DNA of 64,000 nt from Oikopleura dioica (lineage: Eukaryota > Animalia > Chordata): contig OU015567.1 of the NCBI GenBank assembly GCA_907165135.1, positions 11,718,001 to 11,782,000 of the forward strand. Direction: 5' to 3'. The position numbers were made by a program, and so were the translations under genes. This document shows, in pieces, positions 12,421-36,698 of the stretch. Position 1 is the first letter of the stretch. Every line of letters starts with the position of its first letter. Below the pieces are notes generated by a model that had not been told where the DNA came from, did no database searches, and saw only the letters and a program-made list of their open reading frames with translations.

Positions 12421-15400
12421 TTATGGATCGGCATGATGGAACGTGCTTTTCCGCGGCTTGCTCTGCAGTCCGATCGCTACTTTCACGCCGCCAGACAGCG
12501 AGAAGTTCACCGTTGTTGTCTCCTCCAGAACTTTGCTCACATCAATCCAGGACTTCGAAAAGTGACCATCTTTAGTGTAATCAATCAATGGCCCATCACC
12601 GGAAGTATCGTGAATGAGAGAAACTCGTGAATGTTTTTGCTTTTCAACCTTCTGCGGCTCTTCTTCTTTAGCTACCAGTTCGAGATTATCGTTGATTTCG
12701 AATTTGACCTTTTGCGTCTTGCTCTTCTTGATGATGTCGATTTTCTTCTGCGAGTCTTGCTTCTTACGTCTGCAGCTGACAATGTTTCTTTTGAGAACAT
12801 TAAGCTTCGGTCTTGGAATGTACTTGTGTCGCGCTTCGCAGAAACTCTTCCAGAAGTTAAGTAAGAGCGGGAACACGTCGATTGTGATATCATGGAAGAG
12901 TGATCTGTTCGCCATTCCAAGCTTGATGTTTTCGATCACTGTCGAGGCGATTTCGGAAGCGACATTGATTCTGCACTTGGGTGGAATAGGCGAGCTCAAG
13001 AACTGGTCTGAAATAAGTCTTGCTTTGGCAGCGAGATTTTTCTCATCCTGTGCATTGTAGACGCCAGAATCGCCCATTTGCGCAACATGTTCCGCTTGAG
13101 TTCTGTAGCATTCAACTTCGAGCCAGAAGCGGAAATCATTAATAAGGAGCTCAGCTATGACATTTCGTCCTTGCATGCGTTTTTGGTGGAACATCTTGTC
13201 ATTCGCCATAAAAGGGTCAATAGTCGTAGCTACCACTTCGACCCAACCTTCTTTGTGGTAGAGAGTTGGGTCGCGGCCAACCGTGAGAAGATACTGTTCA
13301 AATTCTTCTCTCAGTTCTCGTTTCTTCATCGTTGCCACGAATCTAGCTGCTCGTTTGATGAATGCACTGAAGACTTTCCAAATGTTGGTTCCATTTCGCC
13401 CACTGGTCATTTTTAACAAGTCTGTACGATCGCGTCCTATCTCCTTTGGCCCATGTGGTCCAGCTTTTTTGACTTCTGTGAAGGTGGAGAGATAGCGTTC
13501 TCCCCACATATCCTCAAGAGCTTTCATCACACAAGCTTGGGCAGAGATGAGCATTGAAACATTGACTTTCTCCGGAGGAGTCCGCATTATCTCTCTCAGA
13601 ACTTGGCCGTCGATTCCAACGCCGAGAGCACCACTGGAAGCTGAGAAAAACTGACTGACGATGACTTTGATCTTCATTTGTCTGACTTTTGGGTCTTCTA
13701 CGTGCTTCATTACTTCTACAGCTTTCCAAAATCGAACTGATCGCTCAAAATGGTAGGCACGAGCGAATCGCTTGAAGAATTCAAAGTGAACTGGATCGCG
13801 AACACAGTCGACCAAATGTTTCGGTCGCAGAATAGGTCGCTTGAAGACAACCCCGTTCTTCCTGATCGTCGCTTTCATGTAGCTTGGTACTTTTCCAGAG
13901 TCATTTTGTCTAACCATTACGCGTTTCTTGACGACTGATCCTTCCTTTGGATAATCATGAGCTGCCATAAGTGCTAGTGTAGCTGGATCAACTTTCGGCT
14001 TGCGAAGATAAATTGGTGGCGCCTTGTCTGGAATATCTCCATCATCGTCCGACTCTTCTCGGAGAAAGTGTGACTTTGGCAGGTTAGCTGTCAGGCGGCA
14101 AGTTTGCTCAATAAGATAGTATGATCTCTTCGATCGTCGTGCCATTTTAGTTTCTTCAGAGATTTCCTTATCTTTTTGGAAAAGATCAATACGTTGCACA
14201 GTAGATTTTCTACTGGTCATCAGCGCTAGACGATCCTTCATCTTTTTCTCAGCTGCACTCTCTACGAGCGGGTTTCCAGATGACTTTCTCGCTTTAGTTT
14301 TTCGGTTTTTCTCCACGATGGTTCTTGCTCTTCGCGCTTTGACAATTTCGTCTTCTTTTGTTGCCTTGATGTAAGCGCCAAGCGGTATGGGTGGCGCTTC
14401 TTCTCTAAATGCGGTCTTTATTGAGTCCTTGATGAGGGTCGCATTGATTCTGTATTCAACAACATCGAGTATTTTGAGGGCCTCGCAAAAGTTACGCACG
14501 TCAAAGTCGATATAATCCGTCCAGATGGCGCACAAGTAGTCCATGCACTTTCTTTGGACTATCCTCAGCTGCCAGGGGAAGGTGACGGTGTTGAGAATGT
14601 CGATATCTCCGAAATAGTCTGAGTATATGGCCATCCCAGGTATGACCTCCCGCGCGTGATTGTTGAATACGTACTTGTTAATGATATTCTCCATCTCGAG
14701 CTCTAATTCGCTCTGATGCATACATCCAAATTCTTCTCTGAATCGCTCAATGTCCTGCCAAAAGTCGAGAGCGAAGACGGCGGTGTCGTCTTCTTCTTGC
14801 TCGCTCAAGTAAGCCATAAACGGTCCAGCGGCAAACTCGTCTGATCGCAAGGCAGCCTTGAAATGGCGCATCTCGTGCCGGAACACCGAATCTTCGTAAA
14901 TGGAGTATATCGATTCAGGATCTTGATCGCCAGCACCAAAGTTGACTCTAATCTTTTCGGTAAATGTTGACACCTTTAATGCTTTCTCGATGAATTCTTT
15001 CTTCTTGCGACCGAGACGGCGACTTCTTTCGTCCATGATATCGTTTACATCATTTAAATTTTTCCGGGTATGCTCTTTTTTCGGCTCTTGTTTAACTGTC
15101 GGTTCATGTTGCAAGAGATGTCGTTTCTTGAGCGTTTTGAGCGGACGTATTTTCTCAATGGCGTTGCGGCGACGATTCAGAATTTGGGGATTTATACTCG
15201 CCATGAAACTATTTCGGAGTGTATCTTCGTCATTAATCTCATCATCGTGCACTTCCAGACGGTTTTCTCGCTTCGTGATAACCTGAACAAATAATGAGCA
15301 AAGAAAACTCAAGTAAATTATTACGAATTTATTAGTCTAACGATTCGACGGCCACGTAAAAAATATTTTTAAACCATACCTTTACTTTTTGGTTTTCCTC

Positions 15401-30600: not shown

Positions 30601-33600
30601 ATCAATAGCAAATTAATTCAATTCCGTTTGCTGAAATTTTTGAAAAGAGGATGAGTGAGCCACGTCAGCTTCCATCAACTATTGATAGTGCGTCAATTTA
30701 CTGCTCGGATATTTTTGAGGAAGAACCGAGTCAAAGTGGGAAATTCCACTTGACATTATTTTTGGAGCCCAACACTTTTGGAGGGAGGCGGAGCGACTGG
30801 CCGTCAATTTTTTAGTTTAATCATTAATTCACGTAGATGGCTCGTTCATTCTCCAACTTACCGACTAAGAACAACACTTCCGAATTCGCCATGTTCAACT
30901 TTGCCTGCACTTCTTCTTCGGTCATGGAGAACGCCAAACAGATCGAGCTCAAAGTCATGAGAAGCGGGAATGTTGAAATTCCAGCTAAGTGCAAGTAAGA
31001 AAATCGCTCAAATACTCAACATCGAAAATTATCGGCCGAGATCTCTCGCCGTAAACTAAACTCAACTCTTACTTTAACTTTTAAGAATTAAGTAAGTGAC
31101 CTGAACAAGATTATAAATACAGTTTTTTATGGAATTTCTGGACATCAAATTTCTGGACATTTTTCGAATTTTAAGGGGTTTAATTGGGACACTTTTAAAA
31201 AGCAAAAGTATCAAATTTCTGGACATTTTTTCTCAAAAAAGATTTTCGACTCCGAAATTTATAGTCAAATTTGAGTTATGAATCATAACTTATGATTCAT
31301 AACTTATGATTCATAAGTTATGAAAGGTTATTCTATTTACGAAGAAGACTTTTTCTTGTAGAATCTTAGTATTTTAAGCAAAATTCGCTGCTTCATCGCA
31401 CTTTATTATTGTTTTTAATCAATTTTTTGAAAAAAAAAACGTTTAATTTTCCTCCGTGAAAAATTTTAAGCAATTGTGGTGGGACATTTTTTTCAAGGTT
31501 ATGTATCAAATTTCTGGACATTTTTGTGAAAAGTGTGCGACAAAATATGTCCAGAAATTCCATAATTAACTGTACAGTATGCGTGTATTTTGTAGTTAAT
31601 CACTTTGCAAAGGGTCTAAATTAACTCGCAAATTGACTTGAATTTGCTCAGAGAATATGTCTTTCTTGTTGTATATTTCTATATGGGCCAAATTATTTGG
31701 AAACTCTGAAATTCAGATTATCTGAATTATAAACCAGATGTTCTTGGAATCAAATCATTTATTTAAATTCTAGCTATGAAACGATCGACGGCACAGCGAC
31801 GAAGGGAGAAGACTACGTTGAAAATAAGGGAGTTCTTGAATTCGGCCCAAGAGAGACGCAAAAATCTATAACTGTGGAAATTATTGATGACGACCAATGG
31901 GAGCCTGATGAGACCTTCTTTGTCAAACTTTTCCTGTTCGTAGTCCGACAAACTGAGTGTTTGGGCGATTAAATAATTATTCAGGGGCAACGCAGCAGAT
32001 CCACGAGTCAAGCTTGGTGACAGATCCATTAACCAAGTCACAATCATCAATGATGATGGTAAGATCAAACGATGACTAGCAACATTGAATATCACTTTTT
32101 GATACTCTTCCTTGTTTTCACAATAATTTTAAAGATCCTGGAACCTTCCAATTCAAAGAACCAGCATTCATGTGTAAAGAATCCCAAGGTGTCCTCAAGG
32201 TATCCTCAAAATCAAACAACGAGTGTCTACTAATATTCTATTCTAGCTTCCAGTGTGCCGAACTAATGGTGCTGATGGTACTGTATCTGTTGAATGGCAA
32301 TGTAAAGGCATCACCGCAACACATGTATTCTTGGCTGAACGTATTTTGGTACCCAACTGTTCTTTTTAGGGAAGCGACTTCAAGGAAGACCGCGGTACAC
32401 TCGTTTTTAACCATGGAGAGACTCAGAACGACATCGAGATCACCATCATCCAAACGCCAGACAAAGAGCCCGACGAGACCTTCAAAGTATCCATCGTCAA
32501 TGTTTCCAAGGGCGCTCAAATGGGTCACACGAGAGAAACGGTTGTCACAATTATCGGTGATGAAGAATATAAAAACTTGGTGAAGAGAGTTGCTGCTCAA
32601 ACTCACGTTGCACTGTCGAAGGTAAGTTTGCCCACAAGTCTCACTAGCCAAGTTTTCGGCTACATTTATATAGGATCAATAATTCTTTCTGACCCGTCCT
32701 TTTTTGCGGCCAGTTATTAAAATGCGGTATTCCTCGTATATTCGTCGTTGGCAAGAGTTCGAACTCGGAGCTCGTTATTTTTGTCCAGAAGTTAATATAC
32801 CGTTGTCTGGTTGAGCAGAAGTTGCTATACTCCTGAATAAATGAGCAAGACATGTGGTACATGTCGATAGGCCATCACGTTACCTATACTCGTTAAATAA
32901 TTGAAGGCCGGCCATATTAATTACTCATTTTGTTCTCTAGATGGAAATTGGCGGCGAATCCTGGTACGAGCAGTTCGTTCAAGCAATGAATGTCAATGGG
33001 GGCGATATCGAAAACGCCACAGGCTTTGATTACTTCATGCATCTCATTACCTTCGGCTTCAAGACGATCTTTGCCATCATTCCTCCTGCAAACATGGGCG
33101 GCGGTTTTCCTTGCTTCTTTGGCAGTCTTATTATGATTGGTTTAATGACAACGATTATTTCGGATTTCGCGAATATTTTCGGTTGTCTTGTTGGCCTTAA
33201 ACGCAGGGATTCTAATTCAAACACTTGAATATTTAAACGACTCTAAAAAGAGGTGGTAGATTCAAGAGGAATCTTCAACTTCGAGGAACATGATTATTTA
33301 GACGGACTACGTGGACATATTGTTTGCTATTTCAGCATTAACGAATATGCCAGAAGTTACAGTACTTTCGGATGTTCTAAATCCTCATACGACCATCAAT
33401 ATTAAAGATCTCGTGAATATCTGAATTGAATCCCCTATTCAAGCCGCCGTTAATTCTATCACCCTGGTTGCCCTCGGCACGTCCCTTCCAGATCTTTTTG
33501 CTTCCAAAATCGCTGCTACCAACGAGCCCAACGCCGATGATTCCGTTGGAAACGTGACTGGCTCGAATTCTGTCAATGTATTCCTTGGTCTTGGTTTGCC

Positions 33601-36600
33601 CTGGACGATGGCCGCTATTTACCATGCAAGCCAAGGGTATGTCCTTGCACTTCCACGTTTTATTAAAATATTAGTAGCGCTTAGGGAAGTTTCAGAATTC
33701 TGTGACATGGCAAAAAATTTTTTTTTGATTTTTCAAGTGGATTTTGTTAAGTGATAAAAAAGAAGCATTTTGATATAGATTTCATCGAATTTGAGTCAGT
33801 AAAATGAAAGTTATTGCTCATTTAGTGTCTAAAAATAGCAAAACTTTGCGCGCAGTTTCTGACTCATCCGTGCATGGAATTTCAAATTTCTTTGGATAAA
33901 TAAAACACTCCAGGCCTGAAATTCATGTGTTTTTAATTTTTGTTTTTGATTAGGGAATCGCCGGTAAAATGCATGTTTATTTGATGGTGTCTGGTGATTA
34001 AAAATCGGCTGAAATTTGAGACGAAAACAGGAACGCGCAGCGACAAAACGGCCTCGAAATCAGGCGCTTAAAATAAGGCTCATCCCATTTTCGAAATGGA
34101 AATTTCGGAAAGGAAAGGGCAGCGACTAAACGGGGTCGAAATACGGCACCGCAAAATAAGTTTGGCCCATTTTCATCATGAATATGATCTTGAGTCATAT
34201 CATCCATGTCTCCCCAATTTCGCCTTTTCCAAAAATGAAAAATCGGTCAATCCTAGGAGTTATCAAGTGTTAGACCCACCATTCGACTCGTCTCAACGCG
34301 CTGAACAAAACTGCGCTATCAGTTTTTCAACCTCTTCTTTTACAAATATAGAATCAGACCTTCCACGTCGACGAAAATCTCAATCAAGTTCTTGCCATCT
34401 GCCGAGCTCTGATCTCGCCCGATGAAAACTTTTGATAAAATAATGAAAACCAAAAATGGTTCGGCGCTACAATAGAGGATGCACCATATATGGTGTTCTT
34501 GGCGGGTACTCCAGCCCCGTTCCTTGACTTTTAATTTTAAGGGGCTTGACGGCCCTTCGGGCCGTTTCAGCCCCGTTCCTTGACTTTTAATTTTAAGGGG
34601 CTTGACGGCCCTTCGGGCCGTTTCAGCCCCATTCCTTGACTTTTAATTTTAAGGGGCTTGACGGCCCTTCGGGCCGTTTCAGCCCCATTCCTTGACTTTT
34701 AATTTTAAGGGGCTTGACGGCCCTTCGGGCCGTTTCAGCCCCATTCCTTGACTTTTAATTTTAAGGGGCTTTTAAGGGGCACCGAAGGGCCGTCAAGCCC
34801 CTTAAAATTAAAAGTCAAGGAACGGGGCTGAAACGGCCCGAAGGGCCGTCAAGCCCCTTAAAATTAAAAGTCAAGGAACGGGGCTGAAACGGCCCGAAGG
34901 GCCGTCAAGCCCCTTAAAATTAAAAGTCAAGGAACGGGGCTGAAACGGCCCGAAGGGCCGTCAAGCCCCTTAAAATTAAAAATCAAGGAACGGGGCTGAA
35001 ACGGCCCGAAGGGCCGTCAAGCCCCTTAAAATTAAAAGTCAAGGAACGGGGCTGAAACGGCCCGAAGGGCCGTCAAGCCCTTAAAATTAAAAGTCAAGGA
35101 ACGGGGCTGAAACGGCCCGAAGGGCCGTCAAGCCCCTTAAAATTAAAAGTCAAGGAATGGGGCTGAAACGGCCCGAAGGGCCGTCAAGCCCTTAAAATTA
35201 AAAGTCAAGGAATGGGGCTGAAACGGCCCGAAGGGCCGTCAAGCCCTTAAAATTAAAAGTCAAGGAATGGGGCTGAAACGGCCCGAAGGGCCGTCAAGCC
35301 CTTAAAATTAAAAGTCAAGGAACGGGGCTGAAACGGCCCGAAGGGCCGTCAAGCCCTTAAAATTAAAAGTCAAGGAATGGGGCTGAAACGGCCCGAAGGG
35401 CCGTCAAGCCCTTAAAATTAAAAGTCAAGGAATGGGGCTGAAACGGCCCGAAGGGCCGTCAAGCCCCTTAAAATTAAAAGTCAAGGAACGGGGCTGAAAC
35501 GGCCCGAAGGGCCGTCAAGCCCCTTAAAATTAAAAGTCAAGGAACGGGGCTGGAGTACCCGCCAAGAACACCATATATGGTGCATCCTCTATTGTAGCGC
35601 CGAACCATTTTTGGTTTTCATTATTTTATCAAAAGTTTTCATCGGGCGAGATCAGAGCTCGGCAGATGGCAAGAACTTGATTGAGATTTTCGTCGACGTG
35701 GAAGGTCTGATTCTATATTTGTAAAAGAAGAGGTTGAAAAACTGATAGCGCAGTTTTGTTCAGCGCGTTGAGACGAGTCGAATGGTGGGTCTAACACTTG
35801 ATAACTCCTAGGATTGACCGATTTTTCATTTTTTGGAAAAGGCGAAATTGGGGAGACATGGATGATATGACTCAAGATCATATTCATGATGAAAATGGGC
35901 CAAACTTATTTTGCGGTGCCGTATTTCGACCCCGTTTAGTCGCTGCCCTTTCCTTTCCGAAATTTCCATTTCGAAAATGGGATGAGCCTTATTTTAAGCG
36001 CCTGATTTCGAGGCCGTTTTGTCGCTGCGCGTTCCTGTTTTCGTCTCAAATTTCAGCCGATTTTTAATCACCAGACACCATCAAATAAACATGCATTTTA
36101 CCGGCGATTCCCTAATCAAAAACAAAAATTAAAAAAAACACATGAATTTCAGGCCTGGAGTGTTTTATTTATCCAAAGAAATTTGAAATTCCATGCACGG
36201 ATGAGTCAGAAACTGCGCGCAAAGTTTTGCTATTTTTAGACACTAAATGAGCAATAACTTTCATTTTACTGACTCAAATTCGATGAAATCTATATCAAAA
36301 TGCTTCTTTTTTATCACTTAACAAAATCCACTTGAAAAATCAAAAAAAAATTTTTTGCCATGTCACAGAATTCTGAAACTTCCCTTAGTAAAACGTGCTT
36401 CTTGAGAGCTCATCAAAGTAGATTGGGAGAAACAAAAAAGAATAAAATCATTAATTTTAGATCTGTCTTCCAAGTTCCCGCTGGTAGTTTGGCCTTTTCC
36501 GTCACAGTTTTCTCGATCTGTGCCGTCACAACCATTGGATTCCTTTTCGCAAGGCGGACACTGTCTTATTTCGGCAATGCCGAGTTAGGAGGCCCCAATA

Positions 36601-36698
36601 AACAGAAATGGGCATCCGGCATCTTCCTGATCACGCTGTGGCTATTCTACGTTCTGATGTCCACTCTCCAAGCCTACGATTTCATTCCTGGGTTCTAG
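27651..36698 (+). CDS. Sodium/calcium exchanger (SLC8/NCX family)
   Basis: GVAIVADIFMVSIEVITSK, alpha-1 repeat WNATVANLTLMAMGSSMPE, two Calx-beta domains (YETIDGTA, DDDQWEPDETFFV), alpha-2 repeat LVALGTSLPDLFASKIAA and GNVTGSNSVNVFLGLGLPW. Confidence 0.93.
31120..31572. mobile_element. 453-bp Tc1/mariner-type MITE in an NCX intron
   Basis: TA at 31118-31119 and 31573-31574. 26-bp TIR CAGTT(TT/AA)TTATGGAATTTCTGGACAT. Internal direct copies of ATCAAATTTCTGGACAT. Confidence 0.8.
33684..36384. mobile_element. 2701-bp foldback element with ~830-bp unique inverted arms plus inverted minisatellite arrays; PIF/Harbinger-like ends; non-autonomous
   Basis: Direct TTA at 33681-33683 and 36385-36387. 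Ends GGGAAGTTTCAG...CTGAAACTTCCC. Arms are reverse complements; the only differences seen by eye are homopolymer lengths. Lies in NCX intron 33637-36460. Confidence 0.9.
34512..35552. repeat. 56/55-bp GC-rich minisatellite in two head-to-head arrays (~4.6 copies forward, 14 copies reverse)
   Basis: Unit CAGCCCC(G/A)TTCCTTGACTTTTAATTTTAAGGGGCTTGACGGCCCTTCGGGCCGTTT starts at 34512, 34568, 34624, 34680 and 34736. Reverse-complement units run 34782-35552. Confidence 0.95.

Follow-up and report, generated by a model that had tools for sequence, protein, structure and literature searches.

The last intron of a Na/Ca-exchanger (NCX) gene in the larvacean Oikopleura dioica contains a 2,701-bp foldback element, which lies at positions 33684-36384 of a 64,000-nucleotide stretch of contig OU015567.1 (the window; the contig is called C5 below) in the assembly OKI2018_I69. 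We consider it probable that this element is a non-autonomous cut-and-paste DNA transposon and a member of a small, low-copy family of foldback elements in O. dioica. The family is apparently undescribed, as the initial annotation of the window had thought possible: the literature searched holds no report of foldback elements in Oikopleura. The genome of O. dioica ranks among the smallest of any animal, and its DNA transposons are little described. The genome searched comprised 64,281,565 bases in 19 contigs; the published assembly, given as 64.3 Mb in 19 scaffolds, was built from Nanopore reads with Illumina polishing (PMC8008620).

Is the element a solitary palindrome, or does it have mobile relatives? 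A genome search with its left arm returned several relatives, on C1, C2, C3, C4 and C5. The further copies of the arms that the initial annotation had proposed to look for therefore exist, as six complete members, the window element included, and a copy on C3 that is only partial (86%). On C1, a 5.8-kb element has arms 95-96% identical to those of the window element and sits in the target C|TAA|G. The remaining complete members are a 1.9-kb foldback on C5 (78%; target C|TGA|G), a 2.1-kb element on C2 (C|TTA|C), a 1.8-kb foldback on C1 (G|TTT|G) and a 13-kb element on C4 (T|TTA|G); the window element on C5 occupies C|TTA|G. All six begin and end with GGGARRTTTCARA, and all six are flanked by 3-bp direct repeats, namely TTA in three cases and TAA, TGA and TTT in one each. 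The exact target C|TNA|G is found in three of the six and TNA is duplicated in five, the exception being the TTT in GTTTG. A C precedes the duplication in 4/6 members and a G follows it in 5/6, where base composition would predict about 1.2/6 for each (binomial estimates of p about 0.02 for C at -1 and about 0.002 for G at +1). Precise shared ends and duplications of constant length, at independent loci and in 6/6 members, are the signature of cut-and-paste movement; they establish transposition and are strong evidence that the structure is no artefact of assembly. The terminus pattern occurs at 19 sites in the genome, against 1 for a reversed control, which indicates about ten family elements. 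Across all subfamilies the best-conserved part is a subterminal block of about 70 nt (82-94%), a putative transposase-binding region judging by this conservation. The 1.8-1.9-kb members have arms of 755-870 bp and a short loop. At C2:9606784-9607034 two family termini lie only 251 bp apart and delimit a miniature family member.

The edges of the window element read TTA|GGGAAG...CTTCCC|TTA, with the duplicated TTA at 33681-33683 and 36385-36387, and the insertion is thus reconstructed at C|TTA|G in the last NCX intron. From the left end, a unique arm of 828 bp on the plus strand (33684-34511, first letters GGGAAGTTTCAGA) carries the subterminal block at 34022-34092 and, after it, a diverged tandem second copy at about 34111-34185. 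The arm is followed by a 56-bp array of 4.6 units (34512-34771, plus strand), an unpaired centre of 23 nt enclosed by the innermost inverted pair (34772-34794), a 55/56-bp array of 13.9 units (34782-35552, plus strand; both arrays delimited with Tandem Repeats Finder) and a unique arm of 832 bp on the minus strand (35553-36384). The right arm is the reverse complement of the left and contains the mirror copy of the subterminal block at 35973-36043 (minus strand). A repeat search aligned the arms as three gap-free inverted blocks, 97-100% complementary; gapped alignment gave no substitution, and its 4 indel columns all fall within two homopolymer runs. The right array is the reverse complement of the left, so that the arrays stand head to head, and the left array repeats, in mirror image, the inner end of its right counterpart, array/arm junction included. 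The arrays are unequal, with about nine right-hand units (roughly 510 nt) lacking a left partner. The centre of the element holds an 11-nt microduplication (TTTTAAGGGGC) at the strand-switch junction. Arms and mirrored array together make up about 2.2 of the 2.7 kb. The element thus has the two properties of the foldback class, tandem repeats inside its inverted repeats, and inverted repeats that dominate the element with little coding sequence between them. Its largest open reading frames (ORFs) span 109, 89, 82 and 69 aa and are mirror images of one another. A Pfam scan of these ORFs returned 0 matches, and since none exceeds 109 aa the window element encodes no transposase; an Rfam search of the element matched no family. 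The initial annotation had thus correctly described the ends, the arms of about 830 bp that differ only in homopolymer length and the lack of a transposase. Its near-perfect foldback is borne out for the arms and 260 bp of array, but not for the whole element with its unequal arrays. Likewise, the head-to-head 56-bp arrays around a centre of about 25 nt are present, with 23 nt unpaired, but they number 4.6 and 13.9 units.

How do two arms stay identical in a family whose copies have diverged? We aligned the four arms of the window element and of the 5.8-kb copy on C1, its sister. The two elements differ by 32 substitutions and 5 indel columns, and each of these differences is mirrored in both arms of its element; between the arms of one element we find 0 substitutions (window) or 1 (C1). 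Independent decay cannot yield fully mirrored differences, so one arm must be re-copied from the other. We infer that the arms are kept identical by arm-to-arm templated copying, which would take the form of gene conversion or of repair within a hairpin or cruciform. Arm-to-arm gene conversion operates in large palindromes such as those of the human Y chromosome. These resemble the window family in that arms remain near-identical while whole palindromes diverge; unlike the family, they are non-mobile and far larger. Because the arms evolve in concert, their identity cannot date the insertion, and the recent insertion proposed in the initial annotation loses its basis. The same warning against dating by arm identity applies to foldback insertions generally. 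The pair provides a clean natural example of concerted arm evolution, a process that is usually inferred only indirectly.

The sister copy also bears on the origin of the head-to-head arrays. Its order is arm, a unique spacer of 264 bp, 70.9 units in a single orientation, and arm; the array is one-sided and not head to head. In the window element, the left arm/array junction is an exact mirror of the right junction and the unique spacer is gone. Given the one-sided array of the sister, the simplest reading of the two sequences is that the head-to-head arrays arose by inward spread of the inverted repeat into the array. In the window copy, a copying tract would have run about 260 bp past the arm into a one-sided array and then switched strand or template, a switch that would delete the unique spacer and create the head-to-head arrangement. 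Galileo of Drosophila offers a precedent: its arrays expand, and internal sequence is recruited into its terminal inverted repeats (PMC4168063). The window element would thus show, caught in the act, how an inverted repeat extends inward into a minisatellite of foreign origin, an event usually inferred only indirectly.

From where was the minisatellite borrowed? The 56-bp unit gave more than 329 matches in the genome search, in arrays at over 20 loci (for example C4:7427983-7431034 and C1:8700133-8703747), and the leader that precedes the array of the C1 copy precedes the array at many of these loci as well. The family that carries these arrays (for example at L056:1167-2324 and L055:1207-2460) has inverted ends TAGGGGGTGCACAGTGGG...CTA (TAGGGGG...CCCCCTA) and 8-bp duplications, TATATGCA and CCGATAAG, in 2/2 complete copies; ends and duplication length identify it as a hAT-type non-autonomous family. 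It is abundant; its leader measures about 440 bp, and its internal 56-bp array varies in length, from 4 units up to over 3 kb. The head motif of the carrier family is absent from the window. To judge from these matches, the array of the foldback is a captured fragment, internal sequence only, of this abundant hAT-type element. The capture is old, since the diverged C5 member (78%) holds the same leader and unit in its loop. The minisatellite core noted in the initial annotation is therefore real as far as the arrays go, but it is no symmetric original feature: the sister array is one-sided and the array stems from the hAT-type family. We also considered, and rejected, hAT membership for the foldback family itself, whose duplications are 3 bp long; those of 8 bp occur only in the separate carrier family.

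Which protein might move a family whose window member encodes none? The 13-kb member, 13,055 bp long (C4:5755114-5768168, TTA duplication), has inverted repeats of about 775 bp that are 97-98% identical. It has the first 13 bases in common with the window element, with 76% identity over the first 93 bases, and a 69-nt subterminal block that is 94% identical and forms a tandem pair in each arm. Under the Repbase rule, non-autonomous elements are assigned by equal duplication length and by termini that match over bases 1-11 (PMC4455052); by this rule the window element goes with the C4 element. A multi-exon gene, annotated as chr1.g1528 of OKI2018_I69, lies on the minus strand of the C4 element, and we refer to its 1,543-aa product as P0012; the full-length model is that of the public annotation and was returned by a profile search. 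P0012 is homologous over most of its length to P0003, a 1,461-aa protein from an ENA metagenome. Paralogues of P0012 with 27-31% identity lie in a repeated element of at least 9.7 kb, two copies of which are 99.9% identical (C2:5050500-5060499 and C5:4900000-4909999, the repeat running off both ends); its exons match elsewhere with identical scores, on four contigs in total. Near-identical paralogues at multiple loci are, as far as sequence can tell, the behaviour of a mobile-element protein. By eye, P0012 displays zinc-finger-like Cys/His clusters, and three acidic motifs in it are conserved, namely DYAS...QS, SDNAPSEFKS and HGKSSVDG. Its only significant Pfam match is an MCM3-like winged helix at residues 1472-1540 (PF23191, 31.9 bits, cut-off 27), which may be a captured host fragment or the product of an over-extended gene model. 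An exhaustive HMMER search with the 272-aa exon returned three genuine relatives, besides a repeat protein that was a spurious match; among 1.84 billion representative proteins, the P0012 type has no more than three true relatives. Searches with P0003 gave no match in the PDB by sequence, only the self-match in a word-indexed search with residues 700-1100, and no relatives in a metagenome scan. The first 13 bases, the subterminal block and the TTA duplication in common with the C4 member suggest that the family would be mobilised in trans by P0012, which we regard as its candidate transposase; the annotated gene offers a testable candidate for a new transposase type.

To which superfamily, then, does the family belong? 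We think it likely that the element is a foldback cut-and-paste transposon whose superfamily is best left unassigned, one that works like Tc4 without our claiming membership in the Tc4 family. The Harbinger-type label of the initial annotation would make it a non-autonomous, Tourist-like PIF/Harbinger element with unusually long inverted repeats. PIF/Harbinger elements and Tourist MITEs (miniature inverted-repeat transposable elements) show a duplication of 3 bp, often TTA or TAA, and ends that start with G. All six duplications are indeed 3 bp long, four of them TTA or TAA; the ends start with GGG; and two members sit in CTTAG or CTAAG, similar to the extended palindrome that PIF targets. However, Harbinger repeats are usually far shorter than the arms of about 830 bp found here, and TGA and TTT (2/6) depart from the TWA rule. 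A search of the whole genome with PF13359 (DDE_Tnp_4) gave 0 candidates for the PIF-type DDE transposase, P0012 lacks this domain, and no Myb-like second ORF was seen. We therefore consider the Harbinger assignment unlikely and do not retain the label.

The combination of features that the initial annotation called unfamiliar has a precedent in Tc4 of Caenorhabditis elegans, a fold-back element whose target is CTNAG and which duplicates the TNA in it (PMC11071193, citing Yuan and colleagues, 1991). Could the family be a Tc4-like member of Tc1/mariner, cutting at C|TNA|G? Such membership would account for the three exact CTNAG targets, for TNA in 5/6 duplications and for C at -1 (4/6) and G at +1 (5/6), both above the base-composition expectation of roughly 20%. 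The inverted repeats of Tc4 reportedly measure roughly 770 bp around a short loop (Yuan and colleagues, 1991), much like the 755-870-bp arms and short loop of our 1.8-1.9-kb members. The two families are alike in their fold-back form and in a 3-bp duplication, which is TNA in Tc4 and in five of our six members, and most Tc4 copies are non-coding. In contrast, Tc4 has a DDD Tc1/mariner transposase, and P0012 contains no Tc1/mariner Pfam domain; a genome search with DDE_3 gave no match above cut-off, and seven DDE_1 loci all lie far from any family terminus. Tc4 has moreover been reported only from Ecdysozoa, namely from nematodes, arthropods and tardigrades (PMC11071193), and it is not described with an internal minisatellite, unlike the window element. 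A place in Tc1/mariner as a Tc4-like member is accordingly improbable in our judgement. An assembly artefact, be it a Nanopore read that folded back into a chimera or an inverted duplication that was collapsed, appears highly improbable. Nanopore reads underlie the assembly (PMC8008620), such assemblies are prone to errors in palindromes and tandem arrays, and the arm differences are limited to homopolymers. Against this stand six members at separate loci with the same precise ends and 3-bp duplications. With 32 substitutions from its nearest relative the element is no misplaced duplicate, its flanks rejoin as a normal 120-nt intron with the exon junction in frame, and unequal arrays are not expected from a simple read fold-back. 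Within the reading that we prefer, a foldback transposon of unassigned superfamily, we tentatively suggest a more specific possibility: an undescribed superfamily, or a deeply diverged larvacean cut-and-paste lineage, with a P0012-type transposase of about 1,500 aa. This enzyme, with N-terminal zinc fingers followed by a core with the three motifs, would cut C|TNA|G, and the foldback derivatives would persist because hairpin-templated repair re-copies one arm from the other.

Several observations weigh against the reading that we prefer. Pfam scans of every large ORF of the 13-kb element, of P0012 and of P0003 revealed no domain of a transposase. The sole tie to a named family, DUF7869, which occurs in putative transposases, comes from a language model: the ESM Atlas places residues 700-1110 of P0003 near DUF7869 clusters with a similarity of 0.95, in 27/30 hits. 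The DUF7869 profile (PF25273) matched neither P0003 nor the exons; its best match in the genome (E 0.43) fell at an unrelated locus, and the literature searched contained nothing on DUF7869. AlphaFold modelled the 272-aa exon poorly (pLDDT 55), and a fold search with the model gave only noise (best Z 6.2). The window and 13-kb elements align solely in their termini and in the 70-nt block, so that cross-mobilisation between them stays a proposal. The concerted-evolution result rests on one pair of copies, and in a Nanopore-based assembly array lengths and homopolymer runs may be inaccurate. Finally, a search of the assembly with the right flank, for an empty haplotig, matched the locus alone and revealed no empty site, and the empty-site 22-mer was not found in metagenome contigs.

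Foldbacks with a similar architecture are known from Drosophila. Galileo, a member of the P superfamily, as well as Tetris and FB have 7-9-bp duplications. They also have other termini, and Galileo a P-like transposase, in contrast to the window family with its 3 bp. Like the window family, Galileo, Tetris and FB combine long inverted repeats with tandem repeats and are mostly non-autonomous. Their inverted repeats lengthen as arrays expand and as internal sequence is recruited (PMC4168063); the array of the window element differs in that it was borrowed from a hAT-type element.

The host intron (GT...AG, 33637-36460, plus strand) measures 2,824 nt, or 120 nt after removal of the element and one TTA; the median intron of O. 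dioica OKI2018_I69 is 49 nt (PMC8008620). It is the last intron of the NCX gene; the initial annotation had rightly placed the element in an NCX intron. The end of the upstream exon (33554-33636, plus strand) and the last exon through the stop codon (36461-36698, plus strand) match consecutive stretches of the Na_Ca_ex profile, positions 71-97 and 102-150, and join in frame across the GT at 33637 and the AG at 36460. An RNA fold of 2,825 nt, almost the whole intron, has a minimum free energy (MFE) of -2346 kcal/mol and 1,086 predicted pairs between the two halves, arm to arm, with uninterrupted helices of 251, 302 and 416 bp. The prediction for the intron transcript is thus a duplex of about 1.09 kb. 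The double-stranded stem of more than 1 kb anticipated for the NCX pre-mRNA agrees with this calculation, a thermodynamic prediction only. Such a duplex would place the splice sites within about 120 nt of each other, and a 2.8-kb intron with a predicted stem of this size is an obvious place in which to seek splicing, editing or small-RNA effects.

Dispersed repeats share parts of the arms: positions 558-644 of the arm match a MITE about 650 bp long, and positions 742-826 match another dispersed family. The arms are therefore modular, as in Tetris, which has a modular build and ends in common with a MITE (PMC4079207). The MITE found here has ends GATAATTTCAAAAAAATTTTTGCGGGTC and many near-identical copies, for example at C5:10286650-10287300; its subterminal 88 bp are 80-88% identical to arm positions 558-644, in opposite orientation relative to the end. 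A small inverted-repeat insertion at c4 coordinates 13056-13540 shares the 558-644 block. The inner arms of the 1.8-kb foldback on C1 (L035:2689-3444) have a relative in a stretch between exons of the P0012 gene (L034:8006-8494); the short foldbacks therefore appear to consist of the ends and this internal piece of the long element. The 13-kb element also contains tandem repeats of 140/280 bp at C4:5763100-5764940.

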